A stretch of DNA of 62,999 nucleotides, the filler included, from Octopus bimaculoides (taxonomy: Eukaryota): assembly GCF_001194135.2 (NCBI RefSeq). It is 5 parts of 5 records of this genome, joined end to end, with 100 filler letters (N's around TTAATTAATTAA, not from the genome) between each part and the next. Parts side by side here need not be neighbours in the genome. Positions count along the whole stretch, not along the records: positions 53,111 to 61,672 come from NC_068983.1; 4 more parts are not named here. One strand, given 5' to 3'. This document shows, piece by piece, positions 52,946-62,039 of this stretch. The translations under genes were made by a program, and so were the position numbers. Numbering within the stretch: position 1 is the stretch's first letter; each line of letters begins with the position of its first letter. Below the pieces are notes generated by a model. That model had not been told where the DNA came from. It did not search any database and saw only the letters and a program-made list of their open reading frames with translations.

Positions 52946-53780
52946 CAGGGTGCGTAAAGTATTTGAAGATATAACTTTTTGGGGTCATTGCTGCATTTTT
53001 TGGGGTTGTCNNNNNNNNNNNNNNNNNNNNNNNNNNNNNNNNNNNNNNNNNNNNTTAATTAATTAANNNNNNNNNNNNNNNNNNNNNNNNNNNNNNNNNN
53101 NNNNNNNNNNTATATATGGGTGGAGTTTAGTTGATGAATGCTGCCATAATCCTTGCCTTCAGTTACAAGGAGTTTTCTTGGTCTCTCGCTCAGCTTCGCC
53201 CCACACATAATAATCAAGGGGATTGCAGTCTGGGGAGTTAGGTGGCCAGCTGTTAGGGGTGATGTGGTCACAGAAATTGTCTGACAGCCATGACTGGGTT
53301 CTCCTAATTGTATGGCATGGTGCAGATTCCTGTTGCCAGACATAGGGTCTTCCAGCAGCCACCCTCTAGACCCAGAGCAGCACTAAATCCTCCAATCACT
53401 TGATGTAAGCCTCCCTGTTGAGTTTGAGGCCGTGTGGAAAGATGAATGGAAACATAACGTCGCCATCACCAGTAATCACTCCAAACACCATGATGTTGAC
53501 TGGATGTTTGATCTTTAATCATTCTCGGTACATCTCAGATTGCGCTGTCTTCATATTGACACCCCAAAACTCTGAAATGTTTGTATTGGAGCTTCCGGCC
53601 CGAATGCCAAGCAGTCCAGCATGTCGTTTCCAAATTTCTGGCAGAGTGAATTGTATCATGGTGCTGTTTTACTCAGAGACAGTGCCCAACTGACCCTACG
53701 ATACTGTGTATGTAGTCAAGTCAAAATATCTTTTACTTCGCATGCGCTAAGTAAAAGACAATTTACCCATCGCACTTTGT
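52946..53780 (-). mobile_element. Internally deleted maT (DD37D) Tc1/mariner element
   Basis: ATG at 53659 begins MIQFTLPEIWKRHA..., followed by KHPVNIMVFGVI..PFIF.., then WQQE(D)SAPCH-37 aa-PLDYYVWG. The left end is TA-CAGGGTGCG. The element spans a gap. Confidence 0.85.
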
Positions 53781-53992
53781 GTGCGTGTGTTTAAATTTAT
53801 TTAGGGGAATCGTTTTGAACATTCAAATGAAGCCCCTATTCTATTATGCCAGCTACAGTCTTATGATACTGACTGGTGAACCAAATTTTTGAGATTGTAC
53901 AGAGCTGTACAATATTAATGTATTAAAATATTTATAAACTCTATCCAAGTGCCATTCTTATTATTATTACTACATACACACATACATAAAGG

Positions 53993-54380
53993 AAATAAGT
54001 AACAAGGATGTCCAGGTATTAGTGCATTACGGCCGTTGCAAGCGGCTCCATTTAATCGATCAATGCAAACATTGCATCAATTTAAAATAAAGAAAAGTAT
54101 TTTCTTCTGCCACTCTAAATCATAGCAGGCTTTAGGTATTTTTTTCCCTAAATTCATTCTTATACAATAATAGCAAGAAGAAACAATGTATTCTAGTCCT
54201 AGGAAAATTTTGCTAAAACATTATAAGGGAGTATCCTGTATGTTGGAAATCTATATGCTCATACGCATCCGAGGAGAGCGGTTTGTTTTAAATTGATGTA
54301 CTGTTTGCATTGATCGATTAAATGGAGCCGCTTGAAACAGCCGTAATGTACTAATACCTGGACATCCTTGTTACGTATTT
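53993..54380. mobile_element. MITE with ~95-bp terminal inverted repeats
   Basis: 53993-54090 (GTAACAAGGATGTCCAGGTATTAG...CATCAATTTAAAA) is the reverse complement of about 54286-54380. Confidence 0.85.
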
Positions 54381-54530
54381 GCTTTTTATTCACTTAATTT
54401 CGAGCTGTGCGGACAACACTGGACAGATTTGGTGCGTCAATTTAAGTACCTAATTCAAATGAATTTTAGATATTTCTTATATATATATAACATTCAAGAG
54501 AAGGAGAAAATGGTATTCATAAGATTCATT

Positions 54531-54612
54531 ATTAATCACTACGATCGTTTCGACCCATCGTGCATCGGTCCTTCACGATGCCCATTGGCTCGAAATGATC
54601 GTAGTGATTAAT
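54531..54612. other. 82-nt hairpin: CACTA...TAGTG mini-element or pre-miRNA-like stem-loop
   Basis: 23-bp outer stem with one G-T pair, a 7-bp inner stem CATCGTG/CACGATG and an 11-nt loop. CACTA starts at 54537, TAGTG ends at 54606, and ATTAAT flanks both sides. Confidence 0.6.
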
Positions 54613-54743
54613 TAAAAAGCTCGGAAATTCCGTTTCCTCTTTCTCTCATGTTATATATTCAATGATGAATCAGTTACCCGAAAAGAGTAAACGTGCTTAA
54701 AATAACATATTACCATGTGTATACCCAAATTTGAAATTATTAT

Positions 54744-54777
<34 letters not shown>

Positions 54778-55061
54778 NNNNNNNNNNNNNNNNNNNNNNN
54801 NNNNNNNNNNNNNNNNNNNNNNNNNNNNNNNNNNNNNNNNNNNNNNNNNNNNNNNNNNNNNNNNNNNNNNNNNNNNNNNNNNNNNNNNNNNNNNNNNNNN
54901 NNNNNNNNNNNNNNNNNNNNNNNNNNNNNNNNNNNNNNNNNNNNNNNNNNNNNNNNNNNNNNNNNNNNNNNNNNNNNNNNNNNNNNNNNNNNNNNNNNNN
55001 NNNNNNNNNNNNNNNNNNNNNNNNNNNNNNNNNNNNNNNNNNNNNNNNNNNNNNNNNNNNT

Positions 55062-55288
55062 GTTATTTCTTTACTACCCACAAGGGGCTACACACAGAGG
55101 GGACAAACAAGGACAGACAAATGGATTAAATCGATTATATCGACCCAGTGCGTAACTGGTACTTATTTAATCGACCCCGAAAGGATGAAAGGCAAAGTCG
55201 ACCTCGGCGGAATTTGAACTCAGAACGTAGCGGCAGACGAAATACCGCTTAGCATTTCGCCCGACGTGCTAACGTTTCTGCCAGCTCG
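55062..55288 (-). mobile_element. Low-divergence SINE family A, long-tail subfamily
   Basis: Reverse complement of CGAGCTGGCAGAAACGTTAGCACGTCGGGCGAAATGC...CCCTTGTGGGTAGTAAAGAAATA. Confidence 0.92.
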
Positions 55289-55723
55289 TGTGTGTGTGTG
55301 TATTTGTTCAACAGTTTAATACTACGATTACAACAACAACAACCACAGTACAAATCAACTATAATCAATAAATATGAAACAAGAATATCAGTTAGGAATT
55401 GTTTATTGTTTTCTTCTTTATTATAGCAATTGTTTTCTTTATTGATTTCTTTTGTTTTTGATCATCTTGGCCGTCACAGATACACCAGTCATGGATTGAT
55501 GAACCAGTCATGGATTGATGAACCAGACAGCTTCTCTCATCGTCTCTCTTCCCCTACACCTTATCGCACACATTTAGCAGTGAATGCTTGGATGTATGAA
55601 TGTGAGTTTTAATGTTTACAAACTCTGAGGGTATACATGTGTGTGTGTGTGTCTGTGTGTGTATGAGTGTGTGTATGTGTGTGTGTGTATGCGTGCACGC
55701 TCGCGCGTAAATATATTTATGGG

Positions 55724-55766
<43 letters not shown>

Positions 55767-55930
55767 TTATAAATTTGCACAAAGCGTATATATATATATA
55801 TATATATATGCGTACAAACATACATACATATGCTTAAATATTTCACACACACTAATGTATGTAAACGTGTGCGTGCGTATGAGTGGAAGTACACATACAA
55901 GTAAGCAATAAATAAATATATATACATACA

Positions 55931-56034
<104 letters not shown>

Positions 56035-56644
56035 CACACATATATATATGTATATATACACACACACACGCACATACGTACATGTATATATGTATATGTA
56101 TGTATATACAAACATGCAGACGCATGCGTAATTGAAAGACTTGTTTGCAGCTATAAAGAATATATCGATGTGCGTATGTGTGTGTGTGTATGTGTGTCAC
56201 CATATGAGTGATTGGCCACATTCACTTTGTAGTACCAGATTTTGCGTGTCTGTGTCTGTGTGTGTATGTGTATGTGTACACACACACACACACACACACA
56301 CACCTGCAAACACACCTGCAAACACACACATAAACATTCACAAACAAAGACGCACACATTGATCAATTCCTATATATCTGACATCTGATATTGCTTTGCC
56401 TCCTCAGTAATTTGTTCTTTCATTTCAAAATATAATTGTTTGATTATTGCTTCACAGTGTTATCTTCATTTTTCTGTAATTCTGTTATTGTCGTTTTTTC
56501 TCTTACGTATTTTTCCTGTTTAAGATATCTACTCTCAGATGCCAGTTATCTGCAACAGTATTTATAGCAGTGGAGGTGGTAAAAATAGTTCTACTATGAA
56601 GTGTATATTATTTTTATTCTCACGCTTTCGCATCTAATTGTTTG

Positions 56645-56653
56645 TTATTATTA

Positions 56654-56697
<44 letters not shown>

Positions 56698-56727
56698 GTG
56701 ATTATTATTATTATTATTATTATTGTG

Positions 56728-56763
<36 letters not shown>

Positions 56764-56766
56764 GTG

Positions 56767-56799
<33 letters not shown>

Positions 56800-56826
56800 G
56801 TGATTATTATTATTACTATTATTGTG

Positions 56827-56863
<37 letters not shown>

Positions 56864-56920
56864 GTATTANNNNNNNNNNTTATTATTATTATTGTGATTA
56901 TTATTATTACTATTATTGTG

Positions 56921-56957
<37 letters not shown>

Positions 56958-56975
56958 GTATTAGTATTAGTATTA
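56645..56975. repeat. Compound (TAT)n array punctuated by TGTGAT
   Basis: Directly visible higher-order trinucleotide repeat. Confidence 0.92.
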
Positions 56976-57051
56976 AGGCGGGTGTTGATATGGCCTTTAT
57001 TAATACAGTACATTTAAAAATAATATGCTCCTAATGTATGCATGAGTGCAT

Positions 57052-57100
<49 letters not shown>

Positions 57101-57326
57101 CAAATATACAGAAATATATGTGCGTGTGTGCGTGTGTGTGTGTGTGCACGTGTGCGCGCGTGTGTGTATTGATGGGTTTATGTATGTATACACTTTCTGT
57201 ACTAGTATATAAAGTTCATAATCATAAGAGTTGTGCCCTAGCTAAGAAATAAAGTTTCTGCGTTGGTTGTATATATGTTATGTGTAGATATACGTATACA
57301 TGCATATGTATATATATATATATATA

Positions 57327-57364
<38 letters not shown>

Positions 57365-58432
57365 TATGTATTTATATATATATGTATATATGTGTGTATG
57401 TGTGTGTAAGTATNNNNNNNNNNNNNNNNNNNNNNNNNNNNNNNNNNNNNNNNNNNNNNNNNNNNNNNNNNNNNNNNNNNNNNNNNNNNNNNNNNNNNNN
57501 NNNNNNNNNNNNNNNNNNNNNNNNNNNNNNNNNNNNNNNNNNNNNNNNNNNNNNNNNNNNNNNNNNNNNNNNNNNNNNNNNNNNNNNNNNNNNNNNNNNN
57601 NNNNNNNNNNNNNNNNNNNNNNNNNNNNNNNNNNNNNNNNNNNNNNNNNNNNNNNNNNNNNNNNNNNNNNNNNNNNNNNNNNNNNNNNNNNNNNNNNNNN
57701 NNNNNNNNNNNNNNNNNNNNNNNNNNNNNNNNNNNNNNNNNNNNNNNNNNNNNNNNNNNNNNNNNNNNNNNNNNNNNNNNNNNNNNNNNNNNNNNNNNNN
57801 NNNNNNNNNNNNNNNNNNNNNNNNNNNNNNNNNNNNNNNNNNNNNNNNNNNNNNNNNNNNNNNNNNNNNNNNNNNNNNNNNNNNNNNNNNNNNNNNNNNN
57901 NNNNNNNNNNNNNNNNNNNNNNNNNNNNNNNNNNNNNNNNNNNNNNNNNNNNNNNNNNNNNNNNNNNNNNNNNNNNNNNNNNNNNNNNNNNNNNNNNNNN
58001 NNNNTATATATATATATATAGTTGTGTGTACAGGTATGTATTTATATACGTGTGCGTGTGTTTAAGTTTGTGGACATGTGTATATACGCATACATACACA
58101 AATGTGTGTATTGAGCAGTCTAATTGCCCAATCAAACTGCACAATGGAAAGGTGTTTACTTAGTTATGTAGCCACTTATATACAAAAATATATGAATAAA
58201 TAAAAGCGACAGAATAACACTTAATGTTTTAATTAATCAACATTTAACAATTATCAGCGGCTTTTGAAAATAAGTGAAAATGGCGTTCCTGTTCAAATGT
58301 AGGTGTTGTTGGTGTTGTTGCTTCTGGCAGGGGGCGCTGGTGGTAAACGTATTTTTTGTGGTGGTGTTTCTGTGATGCTGATGGTACGATGGATCTAAGT
58401 GATGATAGTGGTTTTACTTGTGGTTTGTCGCT

Positions 58433-58675
58433 GTTTAGCTCCAGGTCAACTCCAAGAGAGCAGACCTATGATCGAAAAGATTCCAGTCATGACTATCCAG
58501 TTGTTCTTTTTTTCTTCTCATTTTGCGATGCGTTACATATATCTTGGGCTACATTATTTAACGTATACCCTTCCTTCTTTTTCTTTAAGGCGGTGTAGTG
58601 TCGTGATTTGAGTGAGATTTGCCTGGTATTTCTAGCATGTCGAGCGACTATGTAGAGGCTCCCTTGCTGGCTAGT
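58433..58675 (+). repeat. Interspersed repeat family D, most complete copy
   Basis: GTTTAGCTCCAGGTCAAC...GCAGACCTATGATC...GATTTGAGTGAGATTTG..TATTTCTAGCATGTCGAGCGAC..GTAGAGGCTCCCT. Confidence 0.7.
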
Positions 58676-58689
58676 TAGTAGTGGTATCT

Positions 58690-59061
58690 GATTATGGTAA
58701 TAGTGACAGTGGAAATGACATTGGTGGTAGTGTTGTTGTTATTGTTGGTGAGTGTGTAATGTAAGTAATGATGATGATCATAATGATATTGTAGTTGGTA
58801 GTAGCGTTGGTAGCTGGTGCTGTTTGTAGTATTAATAGTGTTAATAATGATGATTTTGGTGTTGGCGGCGGCGGTGGTAGTGGCGGTGATATAGTAGTGG
58901 TGTTGAAAGTAATAGCATGTACCAACTGCAATAGCACTAGTTGTTGTTGTTGTGGTGGTGGTGGTGGTAGTTTTACATCCAGCAAACTAGTATATAGTAG
59001 TAAAGTGGTGTTCTTATTGGTATGTGTATAAGTTGTGATAACCTTACTAGCAGCGGTGGTG

Positions 59062-59111
<50 letters not shown>

Positions 59112-59228
59112 TGTAGTGGTAGTAGTAGTGCTGGTGTTGGGGAGATGCCAGGGTGATGATAAATAGAATGTCGACGATTCATGACAATTTAGTATTATAG
59201 TGATAACAGTAATGTATTGATGAGGAAA

Positions 59229-59278
<50 letters not shown>

Positions 59279-59280
59279 TT
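58690..59280. repeat. GTA/GGT/GTT trinucleotide low-complexity tract
   Basis: Directly visible. Confidence 0.9.
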
Positions 59281-59930
59281 TTGACAGAAGTTGATTAAGT
59301 GTGCAAAATGAGATACTTGATGACAACTGTTTTGTTCCTTATTGTTTGTTTGTTTTTGTTTTTCTTTGGGGGGAGGGGGATTTATTTTTTATTTTTGTTT
59401 TTCTTTTTTCTTTCAGGATACACACACATTTAAACACATATATATATACATTATATGGATGTTGCTACCAGGACAACAATGGGTGATGGTTGCTATGAGA
59501 CAAGCATCAGGTCGCATAACCAGCTTATGTTTGGCAGGGTAATGATGCATAACTTGCACAACCGGCTTGTCATCTTGATTTGTAAGTAGTGTAAACGTAT
59601 TTATCTCTTGAAGGACATCGACTCAGAGAGCATACCAGGTGCTTTGTGAGGGTGGAAGGAGGTAAGGGGGATGCGTAAAGGTGCTGTTGGTGAATGTGCT
59701 GCGAGTAGGCTGAGCACAGAAAAAGATTTTTTGAGAACGGCAGATATCTAGCGATCGTTGAAGGAAAAAACGAAAACCAAAAAAAAAAAAAAGAAAGAAA
59801 TATATTAAAGAAAGAAGGAATGAAAGAAAGAAGGATCAATGAAGAAAGAAAGGTAGGAAGGAAGCAGAGAAGCTTTGTATAGAATGAAAAGGTTACACAG
59901 ACTGACAAACAAAAAGACAGAGAAAGTGGA

Positions 59931-59965
<35 letters not shown>

Positions 59966-60060
59966 GAGTGAGGTGATGGTCGTGAAGTTTTGTGTAATTG
60001 ACAGTTTTCTCAATGTTATGCAGGATTTAACAAAAGATAGATAGAAAGATAGATAGGTAA

Positions 60061-60105
<45 letters not shown>

Positions 60106-60616
60106 GAGAGGGGGTAGACAGAAGGTCAATGAAATATATAACAGATTGATAGTGATGAAGATGTGAAGTGTGTGTATGTGTGTATGTGAGAGAGAGGAGA
60201 GAGAGAGAGAAAGGTAGATGTAGAAAAGACAGTGAAATATGTGAATTAAAGAAGATAGAAGAGAAGGCAGTAGGGGTGAGAAAAAGTGCGCCGTGGATTT
60301 GAGATAAAGTTGATTCAATGCAAGAATATGTCGTCAACATCAAAAAGTCTTACTCAAACAACAATTTCAAGACCAACAACAGCAACAAAAAAATAAATAA
60401 AAATAATAAAAATGAAATAAAACAAGAATAAAGAAGAAACACCAAGAAAACACTTTAGAATTAAATAAAAGTTTATGCTTTGAACAAACAACAACAACAA
60501 AAAGAACAACAAAAATAAACCAAATCTATTGCATGCTTGATCTGAAACCGTTTGTCTGTTTTGGTGTTTTAACGTTGTAAACGATATTTACATACATCAC
60601 ATAAATATATACAGAA

Positions 60617-60663
<47 letters not shown>

Positions 60664-60964
60664 TTGTGTATATATAAATATGTATACTTACATATATACA
60701 TAGATATTTACATATATATGTATTATATATATATGTATATGTATGTGTATAGTATATAGATATACATGAGAGAGAAAGTGAAAGTGAGAGAGAAAGGTGT
60801 GAGTGTGACAAGGAAAGGCTATATATATATATATATATAAGTGAGATGCTTAAACGGACAGATAATCACAGGCATATCCTTTGGTGAGAGGGGATGAGGA
60901 GATGTCAGCAAAAAAAAAATTAAAAATTAAAAAAAATAATTGTTTGATGGCAGTCTTAGGTGTT

Positions 60965-61179
60965 TCAAGACTGTTGAAGACGGGCCCTGAAATCCCTCGG
61001 GTCTTTACAATAGTCAAGAAGTTCTTCAATGGTACAGGTATTGTAGCAACATTCACAAACGATCCCACTCCAGTTGCGGTCACGCTTCACCAAGTAGGAC
61101 TTGGCTTTCTTTTTACTAATGATAATGTCTTTGAGTGTACTACTTCTATGGCGGAGACCTCGGGATGCATAAGGTGATA
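60965..61179 (-). CDS. Terminal coding exon of a molluscan-type insulin-like peptide (C-peptide end plus A chain)
   Basis: After a polypyrimidine-CAG acceptor (phase 1) the exon reads [71 protein letters not shown] (TGA at 60967-60965). It has the insulin A-chain pattern CC-x3-C-x8-C, GIV, a dibasic KR site and the MIP-type extra Cys (CxCC). Confidence 0.95.
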
Positions 61180-61206
61180 CTGCAAAAGAAGAAAATAAAA
61201 GAGATC
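61180..61206 (-). promoter_or_regulatory. 3' splice site and polypyrimidine tract of the ILP C-peptide intron
   Basis: Minus strand ATCTCTTTTATTTTCTTCTTTTGCAG|TATCA. Confidence 0.85.
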
Positions 61207-61446
61207 TTAGCTTGTAAAATATAAACAAATTCATTAGTTAGGATAGTAACAATATCATCAACTGCTGTACCTTCATAACCATCAACAATACCATTGAAAA
61301 CCCTCCGAAATATAACTGACACGCACATCATCACCAGATCATTTATATTCAACGAATACATTTTATACATTTATTCTTTTACTGGCAGCAGATAATTAAA
61401 AACGTTAAAAGAGAATCTACAAACAGCAAGAAAGGTAGTTAACTGG

Positions 61447-61488
61447 AATAATATCAGCTGATCCAGTATTGGATCAGCTGATATTATT
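61447..61488. repeat. Perfect 19-bp-arm palindrome with two CAGCTG E-boxes, in the ILP intron
   Basis: AATAATATCAGCTGATCCA-GTAT-TGGATCAGCTGATATTATT. Confidence 0.85.
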
Positions 61489-62039
61489 GAACAAGAAGGT
61501 TTTGTAATCATGCACAGCATTCACATGGCTGTATGGAAACATTTTGAAAACCTTCTCACTACCAGAACACGTCAGTTTTCCTAATTATATTTAAATCAGA
61601 AGAGACCTACTTTTATAAGGAAATACTTTTCTAAATATATGTATATATATATGTATATATATGTATATATATNNNNNNNNNNNNNNNNNNNNNNNNNNNN
61701 NNNNNNNNNNNNNNNNTTAATTAATTAANNNNNNNNNNNNNNNNNNNNNNNNNNNNNNNNNNNNNNNNNNNNCCAACTTCGAATTTTCGCGTAAACTGGC
61801 GTTGCAAGCTGAGCTCGTACAGAACCAATTGTAACAGATCATTAAAGATGTTTTAAAGCATTTCTTTGCCTTCTTATTTGGATTACACGCACGCACGCAC
61901 ATATGCACACACGCGCGCGCGCGCACGCACACACACCCATATATAAAGACAGAGCAGAAGAAAGATCACGAAGAGAGATGTGGAAAAGAAATAAGTTTAG
62001 AGAAACATTAAGAAACAGTGACATGTAGTATGGGATGGT

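Follow-up and report, generated by a model that had tools for sequence, protein, structure and literature searches.

The window analysed here, a 62,999-nt stretch of Octopus bimaculoides DNA made of five genomic parts joined end to end, carries on its minus strand the last coding exon of an insulin-like peptide gene, which lies within the 8.6-kb piece taken from NC_068983.1 (positions 53,111 to 61,672; Table 1). The exon forms an open frame (TA TCA CCT ... TCT TGA) of 70 whole codons and one split valine codon, giving 71 residues. Because its first two bases complete a codon begun in the preceding exon, the intron before it is of phase 1, and the acceptor at 61180 is a strong, textbook site that is also taken by the deposited gene model A0A0L8GK08 (P0001). 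A KR dibasic site stands directly before the A chain, as expected at a C-peptide/A-chain boundary, and in the predicted A chain a five-residue DRNWS extension precedes GIV. The five A-chain cysteines fall in the pattern C-x-CC-x3-C-x8-C, which occurs once in a six-frame scan of the 8.6-kb piece, and a motif scan places the canonical insulin A-chain signature CC-x3-C-x8-C at 61051-61007. The preliminary description of this DNA had proposed an insulin-type last exon at 60965-61179 with five cysteines in the molluscan CxCC arrangement after KR. The open frame, acceptor, Pfam match and database identity bear out the exon, and the motif scan bears out the cysteine pattern; of the description's account of the encoded peptide the exon and frame stand, the length being 71 residues with the split codon counted and not 70.

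Table 1. Positions of the features at the insulin-like peptide locus, counted along the window
Feature	Position	Strand	Description
Terminal coding exon, insulin-like peptide gene	60965..61179	(-)	second half of C-peptide, A chain, C-terminal tail and stop
3' splice site	61180..61200	(-)	ttttattttcttcttttgcag; polypyrimidine tract 61200-61183 and cag 61182-61180
C-peptide portion	61082..61179	(-)	ends in KR; holds an 18-residue segment conserved across molluscs
Conserved C-terminal half of C-peptide	61082..61135	(-)	L..I.I.KK.A.SYL.KR
KR dibasic site	61082..61087	(-)	directly before the A chain
Predicted A chain	60968..61081	(-)	38 residues; Cys motif 61057-61007, then 13-residue tail 61006-60968
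Stop codon	60965..60967	(-)	
Internal AG	61159..61160	(-)	21 nt inside the exon; aligns with the Argonauta acceptor; in frame, phase 1
Putative filler first exon of A0A0L8GK08	61271..61328	(-)	intronic 58 nt, MCVSVIFRRVFNGIVDGYE
3' UTR and conserved 3' flank	60284..60964	(-)	blastn and MAFFT against Argonauta; O. vulgaris primer at 60885-60904

Compared with Pfam PF00049 (Insulin; cut-off 23 bits), the exon alone scored 28.7 bits (E 2.8e-6), its alignment falling at the A-chain end of that profile and upholding the assignment of this terminal exon to the insulin family, and the full O. sinensis orthologue scored 37.6 bits, also above threshold. The exon matches, at 100% identity, the 90-aa 'Insulin-like domain-containing protein' of Octopus bimaculoides in UniProt (A0A0L8GK08), and since its Pfam score exceeds the cut-off and it matches a deposited protein of this species throughout, the resemblance is not due to chance. 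A word-indexed protein search returned the self-match only, and the orthologues came from an exhaustive HMMER search and two follow-ups. Full-length relatives recovered in this way were O. sinensis XP_036357072.1 and its isoform X2, O. vulgaris CAI9719717.1, Argonauta hians GAB1600636.1 and the ILPs of Sepia latimanus and Sepiella japonica; more distant ones were Tritonia ILP1, the MIP-3 or MIP-3-like proteins of Biomphalaria, Physella, Lymnaea and Mercenaria, and the Sinonovacula ILPs. Sequence matches of the exon in the PDB were to IGF-II, IGF-I, bombyxin, DILPs and insulin A chains. Several large bacterial proteins (P0014, P0032 and others; 1200-3000 aa) also aligned to the exon at E values of 1e-8 to 1e-4 and were judged to be repeat-amplified false positives; they are Big_3 repeat surface proteins that match via a repeated ..SY..G..F...GMVV.A.YNDG..EEITDY, with no cysteine aligned to an insulin cysteine.

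Our reading, to which we assign a probability of about 0.95, is that the exon is the last coding exon of the O. bimaculoides orthologue of the cephalopod insulin-like peptide, of the eight-cysteine molluscan type. The gene is already annotated in UniProt and NCBI, its orthologues have already been cloned and measured, and it is an ordinary member of its family.

Splice junctions and the distant 5' exon

The O. sinensis protein reads ..LICSPGGYSDGPRQRRNY and continues directly into the start of the exon (..RQRRNY|VSPYASR..), and the O. vulgaris protein has the same junction. That the annotated O. sinensis gene model reads across NY|VSPYASR implies that Octopus uses the acceptor at 61180. O. sinensis XP_036357072.1 (153 aa) and XP_029634273.1 ('con-Ins Im1' isoforms X1 and X2) and O. 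vulgaris CAI9719717.1 are orthologues identical to the exon at 70 of 71 residues, the sole difference being L to V in the tail. These models differ at their N-termini (147, 153 and 203 aa), which points to alternative or mis-modelled 5' exons. The Argonauta hians protein (150 aa) is 86% identical.

No B-chain exon was found in the 490 bp upstream of the exon or in the whole 8.6-kb piece by six-frame scanning and by tblastn with the O. sinensis N-terminus, and the B-pattern matches that did arise within the piece were translated microsatellites only. Homology searching, by which the preliminary description expected the B-chain exon to be recovered, thus found it in the cephalopod orthologues and not in the O. 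bimaculoides piece. It is missing there because the intron is ~90-100 kb long in relatives. The O. sinensis gene spans ~101.7 kb, and exon mapping of the Argonauta locus (L001) gave a short 5' coding exon (MLNHTQT), the exon that encodes signal and B chain, a ~92.5-kb intron and the last exon. The Argonauta signal/B-chain exon ends in AGT TAC G|gtaagt, a phase-1 donor, and the last exon follows ..tttttgcag (acceptor ..gcag|GA). Exon phase, orthologue junction and the Argonauta TAC G|gtaagt donor agree with one another and sustain the earlier claim that a phase-1 intron in the C-peptide matches the acceptor at 61180. Human INS has a phase-1 intron in its C-peptide/C-domain.

The B-chain exon being absent from the piece, and the only deposited O. 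bimaculoides model (A0A0L8GK08) having neither signal peptide nor B chain, the exon could instead be an orphan or pseudo-exon, what is left of an insulin gene in decay, its link to a B-chain exon having been lost in O. bimaculoides. We regard this as extremely improbable. The frame is open and 70/71 identical to that of O. sinensis, the acceptor is intact, the 3' UTR is conserved, an orthologous transcript has been detected in O. vulgaris, and a missing exon is what an intron of 90-100 kb in relatives leads one to expect. Over the 64 codons shared by O. bimaculoides and Argonauta, dS is 0.58 and dN 0.057, so that despite diverged synonymous sites dN/dS is 0.10; the exon is under purifying selection. 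A functional terminal exon whose partner lies beyond the piece remains our preferred reading.

The public O. bimaculoides model A0A0L8GK08 is probably truncated and mis-started. Its first 19 residues come from the intronic stretch given in Table 1, which lies 91 nt upstream of the exon with a GT donor at 61270-61269. That stretch encodes neither a signal peptide nor a B chain, is missing from all orthologues and has no alignment with Argonauta; its use as a coding exon is probably an artefact of ab initio prediction, and the stretch probably does not belong to the real gene. The model probably ends up truncated and supplied with a filler exon because the real signal/B-chain exon sits behind an intron of ~100 kb.

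Between Octopus and Argonauta the 3' splice site is displaced by 21 nt. Octopus-Argonauta blastn homology begins at 61160, with the Argonauta acceptor region at L001 97578-97586, and the Argonauta protein lacks the seven residues VSPYASR; upstream of the Octopus acceptor, on the intron side, there is no alignment between the two. The internal AG was considered as the true Octopus acceptor and rejected, since VSPYASR occurs in both the O. sinensis and the O. vulgaris protein and a homologous VPTSRA in Sepia and Sepiella cDNAs. Because these cDNAs carry VPTSRA, the longer form is probably ancestral, with Argonauta having moved its acceptor. Alternative use of the internal AG in Octopus is conceivable.

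Other features of the piece are repetitive or lie outside the gene. A perfect 19-nt inverted repeat with a 4-nt loop occupies 61447-61488 (AATAATATCAGCTGATCCA / TGGATCAGCTGATATTATT), in the intron ~270 nt upstream of the acceptor, and the piece terminates at 61672 within an (AT/ATGT)n array. Downstream of the gene, dense TA, TG, TTA, AGAT and ATAT microsatellites run throughout 54700-60800, and there are three assembly gaps (N runs at 54778-55060, 56870-56879 and 57414-58004). In 53111-53700, at the opposite end of the piece, the ORFs gave no Pfam match.

The predicted precursor and its conserved C-peptide

The orthologues provide the B region. In O. sinensis, O. vulgaris, Argonauta and Sepia it reads YCGDKIPNFLRLIC, with a hydrophobic N-terminus before it, and across the cephalopod orthologues it takes the form LEHTC-x14-(Y/H)CG-x10-C, with three cysteines; O. 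sinensis shows LEHTC..YCG..LIC. Three B-chain cysteines are found in O. sinensis, O. vulgaris, Argonauta, Sepia, Sepiella and all aligned gastropod relatives. In our alignments of 12 (A3) and 15 (A4) molluscan precursors, which include Swiss-Prot Lymnaea MIP-3, the three B-chain and five A-chain cysteines form invariant columns, all five of the A chain being invariant through to Lymnaea MIP-3 in the larger set. A two-cysteine B chain, which had been held beforehand to be incompatible with a four-disulfide molecule, was seen in no orthologue, the number being three throughout; for O. bimaculoides itself we infer the count of eight cysteines from the 70/71-identical orthologue. Molluscan insulins have been described as comprising a 'B peptide' with three cysteines and an 'A peptide' with five (PMC4408573), and the MIP signature C(1X)CC(3X)C(8X)C has been associated with four disulfides (PMC9221753; PMC12343078).

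The A-chain residues GIV and EELLDYC had also been singled out in the preliminary description as worthy of note, which our alignments do not support. GIV and L..YC are family-wide in molluscs, with the isoleucine invariant and the valine nearly so in the 15-precursor alignment, and GIV stands behind DRNWS.

In the precursor that we propose, a signal peptide would be followed by a B chain with three cysteines, a C-peptide and an A chain with five cysteines, the C-peptide being divided by a very large phase-1 intron (~90-100 kb in relatives) and the signal/B-chain exon lying beyond the piece. By analogy with the family, the signal peptide would be cleaved, and a prohormone convertase would cut after RQRR at the B/C junction, as seen in the orthologue, and after KR at the C/A junction, as seen in the O. 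bimaculoides exon. The two chains would then be joined by the three canonical insulin disulfides, and a fourth, molluscan disulfide is predicted to connect the extra A-chain cysteine (GIV-C) to the extra N-terminal B-chain cysteine (HT-C). Once secreted, the product would serve as a hormone or neuropeptide and signal, as family members do, through an insulin-like peptide receptor tyrosine kinase. An AlphaFold2 model built from the 15-sequence alignment is of low confidence (pLDDT 58), and the top 38 Foldseek matches to it in the PDB are insulin/IGF chains at non-significant E values (0.6-10); these structural neighbours lend weak support to an insulin fold.

The C-peptide is more conserved than a simple spacer would suggest. 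Across cephalopods, gastropods and bivalves, the conservation of its C-terminal half is about that of the A chain, unlike what is seen in vertebrate C-peptides. In O. sinensis numbering, A108 is invariant and K105, S110, Y111, L112, K114 and R115 are nearly invariant in both alignments, with K114 and R115 conserved at 90% or more in A3. The 13-residue tail after the last cysteine has the same length in the Argonauta, Sepia and Sepiella proteins. Instead of being a spacer, the conserved C-peptide half may have a bioactivity of its own as a separate peptide or may assist folding or sorting within the molecule, and the cephalopod-specific tail may confer IGF-like properties, a proposal that the conservation pattern suggests and that we consider doubtful. 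For Lymnaea, it may already have been noted that MIP C-peptides are conserved.

These same features bear on whether the octopus gene could encode a single-chain growth factor of IGF type, in which the C-domain is kept and the 13-residue tail serves as a D-domain. Conservation of the extension past the last cysteine in cephalopods, of the C-peptide's C-terminal half to the level of the A chain, and best PDB sequence matches to IGF-II and IGF-I that extend into the tail would all fit such a protein. The processing sites argue for a two-chain product instead, and make an IGF-type molecule improbable. An IGF-type precursor has no site between its C- and A-domains, where the octopus exon has a conserved KR abutting the A chain, a pair that hardly varies among molluscan precursors. 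Together with the basic RQRR or ERR that follows the B chain, this gives the layout of a two-chain prohormone, and the conserved C-peptide segment is common to Lymnaea MIP-3; the D-domain-like tail is the only IGF-like feature. MIPs have been purified as two-chain peptides. We thus retain the two-chain, eight-cysteine hormone precursor as the preferred reading.

Another part of the genome encodes a second insulin-like paralogue of cephalopods, which was encountered in O. bimaculoides (P0102, UniRef RepID A0A0L8I..) and Argonauta hians (P0012). It has two extra cysteines (..TRC.. and FWCGIVCECC or YWCGIVCECC) and lacks a KR ahead of the A domain, and from this sequence pattern it may be a ten-cysteine single-chain variant.

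Transcription, relatives and the con-Ins names

Homology to Argonauta continues well beyond the coding region. Colinear blocks (L001 97782-98683) run ~680 nt past the stop, to ~60284, and some are near-identical (GGTTTCAGATCAAGCATGCAATAGATTTGG; TTGTTCAAAGCATAAAC.TTTATTTAATTCTAAAGTGTTTTCTTGGT), which looks like a long conserved 3' UTR that is apparently under constraint. No canonical AATAAA or ATTAAA was found in the ~970 nt downstream of the stop. Both qPCR primers published for O. vulgaris (PMC5736919) align to the window without a mismatch and bound 191 bp here, against 190 bp published, so that the pair reaches from A-chain coding sequence into the 3' UTR. Because one primer matches 60885-60904 exactly, the O. 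vulgaris orthologue is transcribed at least to the position corresponding to 60885. This is the O. vulgaris 'Mirp' (molluscan insulin-related peptide 3) of Baldascino et al. 2017, likened to our gene by its primers and expression data; that paper places the transcript at 100-1000 CPM in the gastric ganglion, with expression shifting with parasite load (PMC5736919).

Decapodiform relatives extend the comparison. Sepiella japonica SjILP (QHI00145.1; PMC9221753) and the Sepia latimanus ILP are 161-aa proteins with eight cysteines and the A-chain pattern C(1X)CC(3X)C(8X)C; they share KRDRNW(S/T)GIVCECCYN and 13 residues past the last cysteine with the octopus precursor, to which they are ~60% identical, and from which they depart by an extended N-terminus and a C-peptide that diverges in its middle. 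Ovary cDNA was the source from which SjILP was cloned; it is expressed most highly in ovary, followed by pancreas, liver and brain, and vitellogenin transcripts fall when it is knocked down (PMC9221753). SjILP is functionally characterised, by ovary-biased expression and RNAi, whereas the octopus gene is known from sequence and from expression in O. vulgaris.

More distantly, Lymnaea stagnalis MIP-3 (MPI3_LYMST, P80090), a founding member of the family, shares the 3+5 cysteines, IVCECC, the ..K..A.SYL.KR segment and the KR before the A chain, but at ~36% identity it differs in having no tail past the last cysteine and another N-terminal A-chain extension. Vertebrate insulin and IGF (PF00049) share the A-chain core GIV..CC...C...L..YC and the prohormone layout; relative to vertebrate insulin the octopus exon adds a cysteine at the vertebrate A4 position, so that four disulfides are predicted instead of three, and has a five-residue extension before GIV, a 13-residue tail and a partly conserved C-peptide.

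The names attached to the orthologues invite a different interpretation. NCBI's 'con-Ins Im1' would make the gene a weaponised insulin of the salivary gland, that is, a venom component, and what speaks for this is solely the automatic naming of the O. sinensis, Argonauta and O. vulgaris proteins as 'con-Ins Im1', 'con-Ins Im1-like' and 'con-Ins Im2-like'. These names look as if carried over by similarity, and the gene is a slow-evolving single-copy orthologue across octopods and decapodiforms, unlike fast-evolving venom paralogues. The tissues for which orthologue expression has been reported are gastric ganglion, ovary, pancreas, liver and brain. Tachykinins are the only octopus entry in reviews of venom hormone mimics, MIP-like conoinsulins have no apparent similarity to octopus insulin in the cluster analysis of PMC12343078, and a 2026 preprint on the cephalopod venom gland has insulin solely in its abbreviation list. 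In reported expression and in the venom literature we found no evidence supporting a salivary or venom role, and the gene is not placed among the Con-Ins; we consider a venom insulin scarcely credible and keep to an endogenous hormone of the molluscan insulin family.

Beyond annotation the finding matters little. It corrects the public O. bimaculoides gene model and misleading names, in that 'con-Ins' on octopus orthologues is not evidence of venom function, and it supplies exact locus coordinates that are useful for work on octopus insulin signalling in feeding, reproduction and senescence.
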